From Adineta vaga (Eukaryota > Animalia > Rotifera): a DNA stretch of 64,000 nt. Position 1 is the first letter of the stretch. Each line of letters begins with the position of its first letter. The position numbers were made by a program, and so were the translations under genes. Below, in pieces: positions 16,836-25,781 of the stretch. The stretch covers positions 10,788,001 through 10,852,000 of the forward strand of contig CP075495.1 in NCBI GenBank assembly GCA_021613535.1, written 5' to 3'. The notes under the pieces were generated by a model, which was not told the DNA's origin, did no database searches, and worked only from the letters and a program-made list of their open reading frames with translations.

Positions 16836-18816
16836 TTATTGCCATAGGAGATCTGATGATGCTGGCATGTATTCTGTAACTGGACGGGTTGGCATTCCAG
16901 ATATTATAGCAGATGCTGATGCATTCGTTTTTGAATTTGCAAATGGAACGAACTGAGAAAATTGATTAGTTAACTAAAACGAGTAAAACAAACAAAGAAT
17001 TGACAAATCTGACAATAATAAATTGTTTACTTGATCATTTGTAAATGTTGATGGAGCATTTTGAAGTGTAGGTGTACTCATATTATTAGAATTATTATGA
17101 TTCATATTGGGTATTCCAGTTGCTGGTGGAAATTGATGACCTTGCTAAAAAGAAAATATTGAAATAATATATGAAGGAAGCAGCTGATTCAATGGTAAAG
17201 ATTTACTTGAGATTGAAATCCTGGATGAGTTCCACTATTAAATGTTTGTTGATAAAGATTACTGCCAAATGATGCAGATTTCTGATGAGAATGGAAATGA
17301 TGTGGTTGAGCTTGTGAATGAGGAAAACCAGGTGTATTCACTGAATAAAAATGTGTCATTTATTGAAATGTTTTCTTTAATCAATTATCACAGAAAAAGA
17401 GTTAAAAATGACATACTTTGAGGTAATTGTATCGTTGGTGGACGAATATTTGCACCTGATATCGTGCCAATAGATGTTGAAGGTGTATTGAATAATGCCA
17501 GAATTTTGTCATTACTCAGAACACCACTTGTATTTGTTGAAGAACTGATTTCATTCGAAGATAAAAATGCACTGTGTAAATCCTGATCCAAATTTGTTGT
17601 CGCTACATTAACTACGTTCACAGTTGTCGATGGTACTGATGAAAATATATCATGTAAAGGATCAATAATGTCAGTTGAAGAAGGTTTGGTTGAGGTAATT
17701 GTATTCATTGAAGAAGTCGATGTTATTGGTAATGATGGCTCATCTAGGAATAAATTCATATTAGCATATCATTTTATTGAATAGAATTTTATTCTACCTA
17801 AACCTAATAAATTCAAATGATTTTCTACAACTACAGGTTGAATTGGTGTTGAAATCGATGCTGTCGAAGATGATGGAGTCGTTGATGTTGGACGATCATT
17901 ACCTGCTTGTCGTACTGGATTAGTTGCTGTCGCTGGTGCTACGAATGCTTTTATTTTTGGAATGTTATTGTTAACAGTTTTCTCTGTCTAAAATTTTATT
18001 TTATATATATAATTCATTTTGAGAAGAAAAGTAAGCCACTCTTTACTTGTCCTGATTCCACTGTTGGTTCTACACGTCGTTGATTTGTTTCTGATTCAAT
18101 CAACTAAATAAAAATAGAAAACTATGTTTATAAATCTTATAGAATACAATCTTTGTATGTTTCAATGTTAGAAAAGAAAAACAAAAGACAAGACAACACT
18201 GACATCACTAGACACCGTTATTTCTGGTGGGATCCATTCTTTGGCAATCCATTTCCGTTGTTCATATTTAGCGCGAATAAATGATTCCAACGCACTATTG
18301 AATTCAATAGAAGAAATCATTAAAATAAGATAAGAATCCTTTTCTCTACATACGAATCAGCCTGAGGTCGTCGAAAGCCAGGAGGTAGATTAGCTTCATA
18401 TACGGCGCGTGCACGATTATTCCCCATTGCTTGCATGGACTAATTGATTAGAAAGAAAGCAATGTAAAATAAAAACGAACGAAAGACATCGTTTTTAAAA
18501 AAATTTCATACCGCAATTTGTTCAGCTGTCCATGAATCTAAATTAACTGATTTCACTTTCGATATGTGTACACCTAAATTCCGATGAAATCCAGCACAAC
18601 GAATACAAATAAAAATACCAAGATTCCAACTAGCCCATCGAGGACCTGAGAGGTAAGAAATAATACAACATTCATTGAATTGATAATTGTTGTATTCCTA
18701 CTTTTTGTATCACAATCAACACAAAATCGATTGTCATCTTCTTTGAGCATTTGTGCTAATATCATTTGATATTTTTCTTGCATTTTCGATTTTTCACGTT
18801 CTGAACGTATCGACAT
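16836..18816 (-). CDS. SMAP1: Stromal membrane-associated protein (SMAP1/2-like ArfGAP)
   Basis: N-terminal ArfGAP zinc finger [63 protein letters not shown] motif, C-terminus DLLWQ*. Confidence 0.92.
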
Positions 18817-20134
18817 ATTGATTGAATATCAAACAATATTATAGTCAATATTCTATAAATGAATACAGAAAAAAATAAAGGATAAAATTCATTGTCATAA
18901 AAATTCTTCACAAAGAAAAGTATTAAAATAATAAATTTCCTAAATACACACGACATCATATCATCATCATCATCGACATCAAAATATTTTCTTATTGGTA
19001 GAAAGCAATGTACCAATAAGAAAACTTTGCCAAAGAGTGTCACTTTATGCAGGATAAGAGAAATATCTGCAGTTCTTCACATACACAATTCATATTGTAC
19101 TAACATTTAATTCACTGGTCTTTCAAATAAAGTCTATTCTATCATAGTGATATTATACAGACCAAACGATAAATATAATAAAACGGAAGTTACTTCGTTT
19201 TCAAAAGTCAATAGAGTTATAGGATATACTATCTCTCTCTCTTTAAGCATCGATATAAATCAATCCTAATTGTTGTTGGACTTCAAGTATATACGTACAA
19301 GTAAATACTATAATAGTCTAATAAAATAGCCATTTGAAAGAAATCAAGCAGTTTTGTAATGTATAACTATGTGAGGCATTTTAACCTTTTGTATAAAAGA
19401 TGATTTTCTCCAAATTATCATCACAAAGCAAATCTTGCATAGTTATTAGTTATATATGTTTTCACTAAAAGTAATTATACAAAACAAGTTAACCATTTTT
19501 ACTTCCTTCGAGAATGTCAACATACATATTTCCGACATATGTATCAGATAAGATTATTAACTTTACAACAAACTTTTCGAAGAGAGTATATGAAAATCAA
19601 AGAACCGTTAATATTTCAATACTTAACATCATTTTCAATTATTAAAATTTTGTTCAAACTGATATTCAATTAATTGAAATCATGTGACTATCTTCTCATT
19701 ACTTACTGCAGATTATTAATAAAGGAGAAAAAAAGGAGAAAATTCTACATGTACTCGAGGGTATTGATTTACTTAATGAAGACCAAGACAGGTGTCTATT
19801 GTTTGTAGGTCATTTCTCACTAGGAGGCTGACATTTTCATTTGTCATCACTAGTTTATATTTCCTCATTTCTTTCTTCGTCGCTTTCATTTGTTTTTGTA
19901 TTTCTTCTTAAGAAATCAAATTCATGATAAAGTTCGACTATTTGATTAACATTCTTTCTTGATCAGATCTAACAAGATATTATTGATTTTTTTCTCTCTA
20001 AGTTCGATACGTGCCTTTTCTCTTCCGTTAAATAATTGAGAAAATTAATCGAGCAGAAGAAGAAATCATTTGTAATCTATCATCTGTCTTTTAGTTTCTT
20101 TTCTATTCATTCGAATACGTGACACAATTTTCTA

Positions 20135-23100
20135 ATGTATTATTTTTCCAGACCAACAAGGTAAGAAATGATTAATTGTTGCTTTTATGGATTTACTAAT
20201 CGATTAATAATTCGATTAATTATTATACATGAACAACTGTCAGATCTGTTTTTTTTTCTCCCACATGTCTTATTACTTTTTTTTCCGACTATAATTGATC
20301 TATTAGAAAATGACCCTATAAAAGAAGAAACTATATCGACAGATTAAATACATAACAACAGCGGATGGCGTTAATATTCTACAATGCCATTAATAATCTC
20401 TCTCATATGTTACAACGAGAAGCGAGGTAAAAAATGATTACAAAATTTGAATTTACTCATTACAAATATCCGTTCTTTGATGTTAGAGAACGAAGTTTAT
20501 TCTCGAGTATTTATTTTTCTTTAAGGCATAAATCACTAGCACGATATCAACAAGACTAATTGACAGCTGTCTATTTGCACTAGTGCAAACTCATCACTAA
20601 CACGAATGACACTGACAACAACATTAATGTATATCGACACGATAGTTGCACAAATGCCGATCTCCGAGGTTTTCTTTACGTGGGCATCTGTCGTGGATGT
20701 CTGCTTTGAAAGTGTACAGTCAACTGACACTTATCTATATCTATGTCTATATCTGTATCTATATCTATATATATATGTATATACAGATAGAAGTATATGA
20801 ATGTATATTGTATATATTTGTATAAAGAAGTAGATTTTCAGTTATACTCGATTGTAACAAACTTTCATCGAAGCACTATGTTTTATAAAAAATAATTCAT
20901 AGTCTGCTTTGATTTGTTAAATAACATATTGTATTCTCTTATTTTTCTCTCTCTCTCTCTTTCTATCCACACATCTTTTCTTAATATATACAATATTTTC
21001 GACACATACATACACATATATATTTGATTATTTAATCATTATATTGTCATTAAATGTCGCTTCTTTACTATCGTGTTTTCAACGATATATTTGATCTATT
21101 TCGTCGACGTAGTGCAGTGAGGTAAGAAAAAAAAACTCTATTTCATAACACATACGTGCACCGAACAAAGAACAATGCATCGGTAACCTTACTCTTTTTT
21201 CCTACTTTCTCTCACAGCTTTTTTAATTTTAAATATAAATACTAGATATTATCCATATGTTTTCTTTTCGTTTTACAACATAAATAAGTAACAATTAGAT
21301 TTATGAATACGTACTTCGAGATGACAGACATTTATAATGCTTAAATAAACAGAAATATTGATTGTTTTCATATGTATCTTAGAGAGAACAGGTAAATTGT
21401 AATTGACATTTTATTCATTTCTTCTTGAATTTATTTATATTTGTTCAGCAACGTAGAAGTCGAAAGTTTTCATCGATGATGAATGACATGCTAGTTTTGA
21501 ATGTTTTCTATATTAGAAGTAGCGTATTCGTTCTTTCAATAAATCTTAATTAGAATCTATATTCAAATAAGATGATAGAATTTCCATACAAACGAGAATC
21601 TTTTTCTTCTCTTCTGAACTTGTTTTGAATAATTCATATTATTCACATTGGATTATAATAATACTATTCTTCTTATCAAATTACAAAGATCAGTTCATAC
21701 TTTCTAAGAAATTATCAATATTGTATAAGTTTAATCTTACTTATAATATTCCCTATTCGATTTATTTCATTTGTAATCATATCACATCCATCGATATTTT
21801 CATACTGCATCGAATTTCAAGAGAAAATTCATGTAAGTACTCGTTCATATTTTTATCTTTGCATATTCTCTTATAAGATAATAATTGATATTGTTGAGTG
21901 CTATGCATTTCTAAACGAGTACACACCAATGAACTAGTAATTCTTAGCACATGTCATACGATCAAGAGTGGTGACAATTCAAAGAAACGATTCGAATAGT
22001 AATAGGCAAAAAAGCCAAAAGAAAGTGGAGAAAAGTTATATTAGTGTACGCACACATCTCTCTCTCTCTATATATATATATTTATAAGAATAACGAGAAC
22101 TACTTATATCTCTATCTCTTTCCAAAAGAAAACATATTAGTTATAGTTCAACTATTGGATTAAACCAAAATTGATAACAACAATTGAAAATAAGACGACA
22201 ACAAATGAAGGTATTATTTTATTCTAGTGAATTATTTTAATATATAATATAAGGTTCAGTTATAATTTGTTAGTGATATAGTCTAATTATAATAAATAAT
22301 GATATCATTAATTATTAGATTTATCTCTCTATTCATTTGACAAGAATAGTTATCTGAAGATTTTTTTATTCATACTTTTCTATTTCAACTATGTCAATTA
22401 TGAATAGGTAATCTGTTCTAACATTGAGTTAGTTTGAAGTTTAATTGTATAGTACCAAGATGTCAATCAATTTATCAGTCAAATATTTTCTTTCATTTGT
22501 ATTCTTAAATGAATCAATAGCAATAATCATTATTCGATCTATTGATATATAAATATATTAAACAGGTGTATCCATCTTATAGAGAAGACCTTTTGTCCAT
22601 GAATAGTAACTAGTTGATTTGTATAGAAAATCTAACCTAGAGGTTAGATAAACTCTGATTAGAAACCTTGATGATACTGTTGAGACATTCAGGGTTACAC
22701 TTCTTTTTCTTATTTTATACATCATCTCTCTCTCTCTCTCTCTCTCTTTTCGTTTTTTTTATGACTTCCATTCTCGCTTTTCTTCTTAGATATTATTCTG
22801 GGTACTATCATTCTTTTGCTCGATTAGTAATAATAAATGTCTAAGAAAAGAAAACCCAAAGAATTTCTCGATATTTATTCGTATATATGTGTTAAACAAT
22901 CAAACAAATAGGAATTGTCTTATAATTAGACAATACATATTAAGAATATCAAGCGAACGCAGAAAAAAGAGGATATTACTAAAGTATGCTAATACGAGTT
23001 TTTTTTCTTGCATATAACATTGCCTTCAATAATACGACGACAGCTAGAAAAAAAAAGCAATCGTTTGACGAGCACTAGTGATAACTGTAGTCACTGACCT

Positions 23101-23323
23101 AATGGCAAAGATAAACGATAATATTGAGAGTAGAATAGAAATAATTCGAATTGTACTTGAGTAAAAAAAGATAAACTAGAATGTTATTCGATGCAAAAAA
23201 TCGACATTATCATGGATCATTGTCACATTTATTCAATAATAGTAATACTAACTGTTCTTCAAGTAATGGAAGTCTATATGATAATCTTGCATTATTATCA
23301 ACAACAATAAATGGAGATCTTCC
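20135..23323 (+). CDS. Array of candidate alternative first coding exons of the K2P channel (20135-20160, 20365-20426, 21054-21121, 21175-21182, 21372-21391, 22391-22407, 23181-23323)
   Basis: Each is an ATG-initiated open frame ending at a GT donor in phase 2, matching the acceptor ttttttcgtcttggcag|g at 24116/24117. Confidence 0.7.
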
Positions 23324-24116
23324 GTGAGTACAATATATAGAAAATATAAATAAACTAATCAAAGAACCTATTGATCTAATTATTTCGACTATAATTTATA
23401 TCATATGAAGATAAGTATCTGAATAGAAGAAAACATTCACGTTTTATCTATCGAGATATTGGAATCTGATAAATGTCATTAATGATACAACAGATCATGT
23501 TTCAGATCAATGTTAGGATGTTTTTCTTCGTTCGTTTGTCCGTTCGTCAGTTAGTTAGTTAGTTCGTTAGTCATTCTGAGTATAGATCGCTTATGATTTC
23601 TGCAAGAAAAGACATTTACACTTCTTTTCTCTTTTCAACCTCCTAGTGATAAAAACACATGTTAAGTCGATTACCGAATATCTCTATTCTTTAATTTGTC
23701 TATTTTGTTAATACATATGAGTGTATATAGTTCTCATGTAGCAGACAAAGATTGAATGATTGGTTTGTATCCTCGCGTCGTTGTTTTCCTCTTGTTCTTT
23801 TTCTTTCTTGTCGATTCTTTGTCATCATTAGAACCGATCAGAGATATCAAGTAAACAGATTCTGTTGTTCTTCTAATTCTATCGATTGGATGAATCAATC
23901 ACTCTCATTCTCTCGTTGTTCTTCTCCTTCTCAGTTTTGGTACTGACTCGAATGCTTACTAGTGTTAATCATCGAGTATCGTTCTATTCTATCTGGATCG
24001 TCGTCTTCATTGATTAACGAAACTTTTGTTTTCCCTAATTTCCGCATCAAATAAATCGTTCCATATTCAAATTTACTCAATCATTTTGCGAATATGTTCT
24101 TTTTTCGTCTTGGCAG

Positions 24117-25781
24117 GAAACAACGAAGAGATGAATTACTTCAAGAACAACAGAGACGTTCTACTGCTCATCAATTCGCACAAGGTAGTATTCAAATGCA
24201 AAGAATGGAACGTTGCAAAAATTGTTGTAAATCATTTACAACATTCATTTTTTCACGTGTTGGTCTTTGTTTACTTGTTGTTGCTTATGCATTTGGTGGT
24301 GGTATAGTATTTCAATCTCTTGAAGCCAATGCAGAAAATGCAAAAACAAACAAAGTTCAACAACATCTTGATATAACGGTGGAAAAATTATTTCTATATA
24401 GTATGAATTCAACAGTTTTATATCCAAGTAAATGGATGGATGAAGCGAAATTAATACTTGAACAATATCAAATAGGTATTGTTCAACAAACCAAACGTGG
24501 TTCTCAAGGTGAACGTATGACTGATGATGCAAAACAATGGACTTTTCCCGAAGCTATTCTTTATGCAATTACAGTTATTACAACAATTGGTATGCGGAGC
24601 AAAAAGAAATTTTTTGTTTTTAAAATCTTATTGAATTCATTCATTTGTTTGCTTCTCTTTTTATTTTAGGCTATGGACATATTACTTGGTATGTATTCAC
24701 AAAGGATTCAGTATAGGTTAATCAATTGAGTAAGAAGTATAGTTATTATCCTTGACTTGAGTAGATTTCCAGATTGAATTGATTAGTTCATAGACAATAA
24801 CAATAATAACTTAATGTCCATCTATTGATGACAGAATTATGTTTGTAATTGACATTAAGATGAGTTATATAAACATAAAACTGATTCTTTTGACATACAG
24901 CTGTTGAAAATGAACTTGACAAAGATATCTTGATTAGTTTGAATGACAGATGATGAATGATAAGTTCTCTTTTTTTTTCAATGAAAAAAAAACGAGAGGA
25001 AAAATTCAATTCTAGTAGGAAAAAAACGCATCACATATCATATTCTTTTCTAGTCAAACACCCTATGGGAAAATTATGACAATGATCTATGCAATCTTTG
25101 GTATACCTTTGATGCTCTTATGTTTGGCTAATATTGGTTCGACGATGGCGGATGCATTTCGTTTTATTTATTGCAACATATGCTGTTCATACTGTAATAT
25201 GGTAAAGAAACGTCGAAATTTACGTGCATTACAATCTGTCGAATTATCACATAATACAACCTCATCATCTTCAATTGGACCAACAAATAATCCAAATTCT
25301 CTTCAATCACCTTCAAGTCATCTTGAACAACCAGCAGCAACTAATGTTGTAGAATTCGTTGATAATTTAAGTATCGATTATCGTAAAGTTACCATACCGA
25401 TCAGTGTCACACTCTCGTTACTCTCATCCTATTTGATACTTGGCGCTGTACTTTTTAGCGAATGGGAAAATTGGAATTTTTTGGACGGTGCTTATTTTTG
25501 TTTTGTTACACTGGCAACGATCGGTTTAGGTAAAATATAGTTAAATAATCAAAAATTTTAATTTCTTTCTTTCTCTTTTTTTTTCTATAGGTGATCTTGT
25601 TCCAGGTAAATCTATTACATCAACTCAAGTCGAAGGTAAATTGATTATATGCGCTCTCTATGTTTTACTTGGTTTATCATTAATGGCTATGTGTTTTAAT
25701 TTGATGCAAGAAGAAGTTCGAGCCAAATTTCGACGTTTAGGAAATAAACTTGGAATTATTGATGATCCAAATTATTGGTAG
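24117..25781 (+). CDS. Two-pore-domain potassium channel (TWiK/TWK family), shared body
   Basis: 4 TM segments and two pore loops: WTFPEAILYAITVITTIGYGHIT and [25 protein letters not shown]. Stop TAG at 25779-25781. Confidence 0.95.

Follow-up and report, generated by a model that had tools for sequence, protein, structure and literature searches.

We have analysed the 5′ region of a two-pore-domain potassium channel (K2P) gene of the bdelloid rotifer Adineta vaga, in a 64,000-nt stretch of contig CP075495.1 (GenBank assembly GCA_021613535.1, positions 10,788,001 to 10,852,000 of the forward strand), hereafter the window. We consider it highly probable that the 4.3 kb between an ArfGAP gene and K2P exon 2 hold, in fixed order, a series of alternative starts of transcription and translation that share one splice acceptor, 24116/24117 (window positions; Table 1). 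Four upstream coding exons, c1 (8 aa), c2 (20 aa), 1a (22 aa), and 1c (47 aa), would each supply their own ATG and end in phase 2. If transcription started 3′ of 1c and nothing was spliced, the polypyrimidine tract of the acceptor would itself be read as MFFFRLG-R, and a sixth 5′ exon, 1b (to 22210), would be a leader without an ATG in the K2P frame. Alternative promoters would each yield a first exon spliced to 24117, with the most proximal transcript running straight into exon 2. One channel body (basic KQRRDELL segment, four membrane helices, and two pore loops) would in this way carry one of five N-termini, the products differing in 7–47 N-terminal residues and being identical from the junction Arg on. 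An earlier note on this DNA, drawn from the sequence alone, had listed seven mini-exons upstream of this acceptor. All seven are there, each with an ATG, an open frame, a GT donor, and phase 2; four of them are real (candidates 1, 2, 3, and 7, here c1, c2, 1a, and 1c) and three are chance.

The RNA evidence comes from whole-animal Logan contigs of four A. vaga runs (X1, X2, X15, and X18) belonging to three studies, compared with positions 18950-24940. A 21121-24117 joint with GT..AG boundaries is present in all four runs, as is the 24589-24670 splice; the acceptor proposed in the earlier note is therefore real, and its third candidate, 1a, is a real first coding exon. A 22210-24117 joint, also GT..AG, occurs in X15 only, in a 370-nt contig of depth 9 that covers 21863-22210. 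More than one 5′ exon is thus joined to the shared acceptor in A. vaga RNA, namely 1a and 1b, of which only 1a is coding. These cis joints also bear on a quite different account of the acceptor, in which 24117 would serve mainly as a spliced-leader trans-splice site and the upstream exons would be irrelevant. Trans-splicing is known in bdelloids, yet none of the four runs shows foreign 5′ sequence at 24115-24117, and the first AUG after 24117 (at 24131) would be out of frame; we regard this account as the least credible of those considered here.

Unspliced RNA was also found. Two X15 contigs, 22776-23375 and 23372-24144, run unspliced across the 1c donor and across the acceptor, respectively, at depth ∼10–11 compared to 46 for exon 2. 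Because X15 depth drops to zero at 21150-21349, 21550-21749, and 22350-22749, these contigs are neither DNA nor general pre-mRNA, and the covered blocks resemble separate 5′ units. The blocks begin near 20472, 21863, and 22776, with gaps between them, and contigs cannot show true 5′ ends. Other non-coding coverage comes from an X1 contig (22821-23005) and an X18 contig (23906-24056). The 5′ extent of 1a is uncertain, with contigs reaching to 21014 (X1 and X2), 20817 (X18), and possibly 20472 (X15). Microsatellites of TA/TG and TC (20723-20792, 20932-20974, 22044-22096, and 22723-22760) interrupt the RNA contigs, for which reason the true 5′ ends of 1a and 1c are unreadable from them. That X15 alone shows both 1b and the unspliced form hints at sample dependence.

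For comparison we used ∼20 related bdelloid loci, comprising the second genomic copy, metagenome contigs, and other assemblies. The metagenome contig scan gave 17 related loci, and open reading frames (ORFs) in databases led to six more (L014 and L032-L036), in which the upstream sequence extends to as much as 10 kb. All names on the related proteins are bdelloid (Rotaria, Didymodactylos, and Adineta). A tree of exon 2 places the window and its orthologues in clade A, and the second gene copy on contig C5 (L008; exon-2 identity 65%) with its own orthologues in clade B, a split supported at 100/99.

The most distal exon, c1, encodes an identical peptide in clade-A loci L018, L032, L033, and L034/L035; its three variable columns are all synonymous third codon positions, and L036 differs by an in-frame 3-nt deletion. 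Exon plus donor are 91% identical, as compared to 20–50%, the random level, in the 30-nt flanks. For c2, the ATG, 20 codons, phase 2, and AG/GTAAA donor are kept in seven distinct loci from both clades (L018, L032, L033, and L036 in clade A; L021 and L023-26 in clade B; L031 unplaced), with variable columns of 14/7/16 by codon position, and in every locus c2 lies ∼400–600 nt 5′ of 1a. L034/L035 have ACG in place of the ancestral c2 ATG, and there an internal ATG opens a shorter frame of 17 codons. Exon 1a is conserved, from the ATG to just past the donor, in every one of the 15 loci with enough upstream sequence, whichever the clade; its variable columns by codon position are 11/7/16 (seven loci), and the match to the second genomic copy (75% DNA identity) is likewise bounded by ATG and donor. 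For the longest exon, 1c, conservation holds in each of the 16 loci spanning it, again in both clades and including the own-genome copy L008. Common to them are a start of the MLFD type, a YDN that never varies, an end of the NG[DN] type, a donor reading GTGAGT or GTAAGT, and phase 2 throughout; its length ranges from 28 to 55 codons, with all indels in frame.

Multiple 5′ exons with an ATG and a donor, phase-compatible with one acceptor, are therefore found in up to 16 loci (c1, c2, 1a, and 1c). Their order and spacing are identical in all five clade-A loci that reach c1, with distances to the acceptor of ∼3.8–4.0 kb for c1, ∼3.6–3.8 kb for c2, ∼3.0–3.2 kb for 1a, and ∼0.85–0.95 kb for 1c. 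Since c1, c2, and 1a end in AG, their junction codon is Arg, and this Arg is kept even where the first base of exon 2 is A rather than G. As judged from these alignments, c1, c2, 1a, and 1c are shown to be under purifying selection at the protein level, and, on these grounds and from the gene predictions of other species, c1, c2, and 1c are probably spliced to 24117 in A. vaga. The variable N-terminal parts, of 7–47 aa, are not complete domains, and the 1c peptide matched no Pfam family.

Some of the peptides may be related to each other. Of the 884 window peptides that begin with an ATG, that of c2 scores highest against 1a (37, against 31 for the next), so that c2 and 1a weakly resemble paralogues, but comparable 1a/c2-like scores (35–39) also come from unrelated-looking peptides in other loci. 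A scan of the own-genome K2P paralogues (L009 and L011-L013) for 1a-like exons gave two coding-strand scores of 35–39; the 1a/c2-like peptides upstream of two more distant paralogues, at ∼7921 (−) in L013 and ∼9025 (+) in L011, may be homologous N-terminal exons. Past their aromatic-rich beginnings, c1, 1c, and the proximal start have no mutual similarity.

The earlier note had argued that so many phase-concordant hits would be unlikely by chance, and this argument fails. In 19000-24093, ATG-open-donor units number 37/34/37 in phases 0/1/2 at a donor score of at least 5 (as low as the poorest donor in the earlier list), 9/9/11 at a score of at least 6, and 1/2/3 at a score of at least 7; the minus strand gives 13/11/14 at a score of at least 6. 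The phases are thus equally frequent, the outcome that the note itself had named as refuting its statistical claim. Dinucleotide shuffles were exceeded in all phases alike, with no phase-2 excess, so phase counting cannot pick out the real exons. Frame-aware conservation across species, instead of phase counts on a single sequence, tells real from chance mini-exons. In a frame-aware screen (cut-offs of at least 3 of 5 clade-A loci and 60% identity), the window ATG-open-donor units of at least 5 aa that passed all lay inside c1, 1a, or 1c, with the sole exception of one short conserved upstream ORF (uORF) in the 1b leader; c2 was found in only two of the five loci, and its conservation rests on the alignments instead. 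Candidates 4, 5, and 6 (21175-21182, 21372-21391, and 22391-22407) are chance occurrences: in seven related loci they align no better than shuffled sequence, no BLAST block from the related loci covers them, and no joint from 21182, 21391, or 22407 was found in the contigs of the four runs. Conservation in the second copy and in relatives, proposed in the earlier note as a check, accordingly upholds candidates 1, 2, 3, and 7 and discards the other three.

Could 1a be the only real exon, and every other upstream ATG-to-donor string a product of chance in AT-rich intergenic or intronic DNA? The absence of a phase-2 excess and the loss of candidates 4, 5, and 6 would fit, as would the fact that 1a provides the sole coding junction in RNA and the sole isoform in public A. 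vaga annotation. We nevertheless find this very improbable, given that c1, c2, and 1c are conserved with exact ATG and donor bounds, third-position bias, in-frame indels, and constant phase, in related loci that are no assembly duplicates (57–77% identity, two clades). RNA moreover contains the second junction, from 1b, and unspliced read-through, and starts of the c2 and 1c types appear in the gene models of other species.

Among those models, the 1a start is used by A. vaga P0204, whose N-terminus is the 1a peptide, and by Rotaria sp. P0209; a c2-type start, joined to RKQRR, by R. sordida P0211; and a 1c-type start by A. steineri P0213. Annotation gives one isoform per species, differing between species; channel diversity is therefore understated, and orthologues seem to have unrelated N-termini. 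Our A. vaga protein search (with exon 2 alone, and with a profile of separate exon rows) found only the 1a model P0204 on record, and the 1a junction is thus already public, in I4U23_009124.

The proximal start has a double role: the bases read as MFFFRLG are also the polypyrimidine tract of the shared acceptor. The earlier note took this stretch to be really an acceptor and no start. Its acceptor is confirmed, and ATG 24094 is also a conserved start, present in 19 of the 19 loci compared while the bases directly upstream diverge. Some 50 bdelloid ORF-type proteins (∼50) begin MF[FY][FY]..., exactly seven codons before RKQRR; all ORF-type database entries start at this proximal ATG, and it begins six annotated rotifer proteins (P0207, P0208, P0210, P0212, P0214, and P0216). 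An unspliced X15 contig crosses the acceptor, as noted above. ATG 24094 is a probable fifth coding start.

Exon 1b was absent from the earlier list. Its 3′ end and AAG/GTAT donor are conserved in four clade-A loci (L015, L016, L032, and L034), and its 5′ part in L015, L021, L033, and L036. It has no ATG in the channel frame. Its phase-0 ORF has seven codons in relatives, whereas in the window the ATG is displaced 15 nt downstream without a change of frame. If this ORF were continued into exon 2, it would stop at TGA 24132-24134, which overlaps the out-of-frame ATG 24131; L015, L016, L032, and L034 share this layout. The next downstream AUG past 24131 is a conserved in-frame Met before ERCKNCC. 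We speculate that the mini-ORF could be a uORF device that steers re-initiation to this internal Met and yields an N-truncated channel, an idea that resembles TREK-1, whose alternative initiation truncates the N-terminus. A 7-codon uORF, MSYDQEW (21951-21972), also lies inside the 1b leader and is conserved in three of five clade-A loci.

Taken together, the variable-first-exon and constant-body layout put forward in the earlier note stands as an architecture, with the 1a and 1b joints, the conserved exons, and the gene models behind it; its membership list was partly wrong, missing leader exon 1b and dismissing the proximal ATG in addition to admitting three chance units.

Several observations weigh against the proposed array. 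No joint from 20160, 20426, or 23323 to 24117 was found in the contigs of the four runs, so that of the seven donors in the earlier list only that of candidate 3 is joined to 24117, in all four runs; this absence is weak, because only contigs of four runs were used and contigs drop rare variants. X15 RNA continues past the 1c donor at the depth of the exon itself (∼10–11), with no 1c splicing visible there. In the C5 copy (L008 6520-6581), c2 keeps its ATG and donor and has a 1-nt insertion that leads to a stop, so not all members are maintained everywhere; an internal ATG there nevertheless opens a frame of 12 codons that finishes in phase 2, the exon being either in decay or shortened. The conservation of ATG 24094 is in part confounded, both because the polypyrimidine tract is constrained for splicing and because ORF callers prefer the first ATG. 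A transcript from ∼22776 or ∼23372 would have 13–23 upstream ATGs before 24094; either the true proximal start site therefore lies nearer to this ATG, or translation of these RNAs is poor. For the other species, the gene models are predictions whose underlying evidence is unknown.

Part of this evidence would suit an interpretation of the mini-ORFs as uORFs or control elements in leaders or promoters, with donors that are unused or serve leader splicing only. X15 transcribes 1c and reads through its donor, which gives a 48-codon uORF ending at the TGA within GTGAGT; 1b holds a conserved short ORF that is unable to join the channel frame; and the non-coding blocks around the exons are nearly as conserved as the exons. 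Yet every unit ends at a consensus donor in the phase of the acceptor, despite the length changes of 1c (42–55 codons in this comparison), which a uORF would not need. The junction codon is kept as Arg despite the G-to-A change at the first base of exon 2, and phase 2 serves no further purpose for the frame of exon 2. We judge the uORF interpretation unlikely, and retain alternative first exons on one acceptor as the preferred explanation.

Conserved non-coding blocks accompany the exons. The block 5′ of c1 has 70–73% identity over 270–620 nt to L018, L032, L033, and L034, and 89% over 98 nt to L036; tblastx finds stops in all its frames, and RNA contigs of the four runs leave it uncovered. 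The block 5′ of 1c matches L014, L015, L016, L032, L033, and L034 at 66–71% identity over 500–700 nt. Inside its X15-transcribed part is a core, 22885-22935, that is 88% identical even in clade-B locus L020. This core contains an AT-rich inverted repeat around TAATTA and AACAAT/TAAACA-like motifs, which resemble homeodomain, Sox, and Fox sites, and is a candidate enhancer or promoter element. The block 5′ of the proximal start (conserved part 23423-24017) has 71–73% identity over 400–600 nt to five clade-A loci, L015, L016, L027, L032, and L033, as strong as in coding exon 2. Neither a conserved reading frame nor an Rfam family was found in it, and the proximal isoform may have its promoter or leader here. 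The Rfam scan of 19000-24200 gave only a sub-threshold mir-297 match (30.8 bits compared to a 90-bit cut-off), and no tRNA was found; the conserved intron blocks are therefore unexplained by known RNA families. The mir-297 match, at 20735-20801, falls on a TA/TG repeat, and we took it as chance. A conserved non-coding block lies upstream of each start, and each start may have its own promoter; start choice may be cell- or condition-specific.

All five N-termini open with an aromatic or hydrophobic cluster (MYYF, MALIFY, MSLLYY, MLF, and MFFF), followed by the shared, strongly basic RKQRRDELLQEQQRR segment. This composition recalls ball-and-chain inactivation peptides and the membrane-anchoring N-termini of Kv channels and of DPP6a/KChIP subunits. 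By analogy with the variants of DPP6/DPP10 and KChIP (PMC3973911) and of TREK-1/2 (PMC3293133), the N-termini may alter trafficking, membrane association, or gating. A stronger version, in which the N-termini would be functional modules and not passive variation, with 1b possibly adding an N-truncated channel, is one that we put forward only tentatively and consider doubtful. If it is true, promoter choice would give cells K2P leak channels that differ in gating, inactivation, or surface delivery.

Table 1. Features of the A. vaga K2P gene and its 5′ region (window positions; CDS, coding sequence; UTR, untranslated region)
Feature	Position	Strand	Description
Non-coding block 5′ of c1	19754-20134	+	Candidate promoter or 5′ UTR; blastn conservation
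First exon c1 (candidate 1)	20135-20160	+	MYYFSRPT + AG, 8 aa, phase 2, donor AAG/GTAAGA
First exon c2 (candidate 2)	20365-20426	+	20 codons + AG, phase 2, donor GAG/GTAAAA
First exon 1a (candidate 3)	20472-21121	+	CDS 21054-21121, 22 codons + AG, donor GAG/GTAAGA; joined in RNA
Further conserved non-coding blocks	20511-20744, 21693-21987		Each precedes a first exon
Leader exon 1b	21863-22210	+	Donor AAG/GTAT; only a short phase-0 mini-ORF, ATG 22205; absent from the earlier list
Non-coding block 5′ of 1c	22627-23180	+	Promoter or 5′ UTR (putative); transcribed from ∼22776 in X15
First exon 1c (candidate 7)	23181-23323	+	47 codons + CC, phase 2, donor TCC/GTGAGT
Non-coding block 5′ of proximal start	23423-24093	+	∼600 nt conserved (23423-24017); proximal promoter/5′ UTR candidate, or conserved intron
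Proximal start	24094-24116	+	MFFFRLG, 7 codons + AG; same bases are polypyrimidine tract and AG of shared acceptor
Common exon 2	24117-24589	+	Basic N-terminal segment, M1, first pore helix (TTIG); RNA joints at both ends; equals P0204
Exon 3	24670-24688	+	GYGHIT of first selectivity filter; joint 24589-24670 in 4 runs
Exon 4	25054-25529	+	M2, cytoplasmic loop, M3, second pore helix; matches P0204
Exon 5	25591-25781	+	Second filter GD, M4, C-terminus, stop 25779-25781; aligns with P0005 and P0204 C-termini

The window is AT-rich eukaryotic DNA (G+C ∼29%), and the genome to which it belongs comprises 100.8 Mb in six contigs. Two Ion_trans_2 pore loops identify the gene at 24094-25781 (+) as a K2P channel: exon 2 has a partial match to Pfam PF07885 (5.7e-4) and exon 4 a further one (2.3e-13), and the selectivity filters read from sequence are TIGYG across exons 2/3 and TIGLG across exons 4/5. 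Exon 4 also matches solved K2P chains (KCNK9, KCNK3, KCNK2, KCNK10, KCNK1, and KCNK6; E 3e-9 to 8e-4). By name, the best non-rotifer relatives are TWiK family 7/18-like (twk-7/twk-18) or KCNK18-like. The full-length model P0204, hypothetical protein I4U23_009124 of Adineta vaga (408 aa), carries PF07885 and equals the window exons residue for residue in the profile search; P0005, to whose C-terminus exon 5 was aligned, is a full-length relative. Exons were searched singly or as separate alignment rows, and frames across junctions were obtained by arithmetic. The link between exons 3 and 4 is given by an RNA loose end past 24688 that matches 25054 onwards.

The upstream neighbour is an ArfGAP-type zinc-finger gene (18179-18816, −; start near 18816) that diverges from the K2P gene, the 5′ array occupying the intergenic space between the two. 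Order and orientation of this gene pair are kept in metagenome contig L018, and an AIG1-domain gene is found further upstream in L032 and L034.

Five coding starts and a leader exon are packed into 4.3 kb, in a genome that is itself very compact. Both ancient gene copies retain the array, as do different bdelloid genera, and it has therefore long been under selection. Varying the cytoplasmic N-terminus through alternative first exons is a known route to diverse ion-channel complexes, and the literature that we found holds no description of the array as such. The earlier note likened the locus to UGT1 and the protocadherins, a likeness that extends to exon layout and to nothing beyond it. In UGT1A and the clustered protocadherins, variable first exons, with presumed promoters of their own, are spliced to shared downstream exons; there the variable exons are plainly paralogues in tandem, each encoding an entire domain, and are served by dedicated promoter-choice machinery. 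The A. vaga exons, in contrast, encode short peptides, one is non-coding, and one is an unspliced exon extension, so that layout alone is alike.

Within the K2P family, the array has more variants than are known for TREK-1 (KCNK2) and TREK-2, which likewise vary the cytoplasmic N-terminus; the names of its best non-rotifer matches set the A. vaga channel nearest to twk-7/twk-18 or KCNK18-like channels and not to TREK. Three TREK-2 variants are known, and these reportedly differ by alternative first exons. Alternative translation initiation of TREK-1 and TREK-2 yields channels that lack the N-terminus and are altered in selectivity or conductance (PMC3293133), a source that also refers, citing Gu et al. 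2002, to splice variants of TREK-2 (KCNK10). A closer parallel is offered by the Kv4 auxiliary subunits DPP6/DPP10 and KChIP1-4, in which alternative first exons with their own promoters put variable cytoplasmic N-termini on a common core (PMC3973911). Those N-termini set membrane association, trafficking, and gating, and the variable exons are evolutionarily conserved, some being shared by duplicated genes and predating the duplication (PMC3973911). The A. vaga locus also has alternative first exons for variable N-termini that are conserved across duplicated copies, whereas its gene encodes the pore-forming K2P and not a vertebrate auxiliary subunit, and its exons are much shorter (8–47 aa). 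The locus is of a known type and involves no new mechanism; as an instance of that type it is new and unusually rich, and it offers a small testable system for the roles of the K2P N-terminus.

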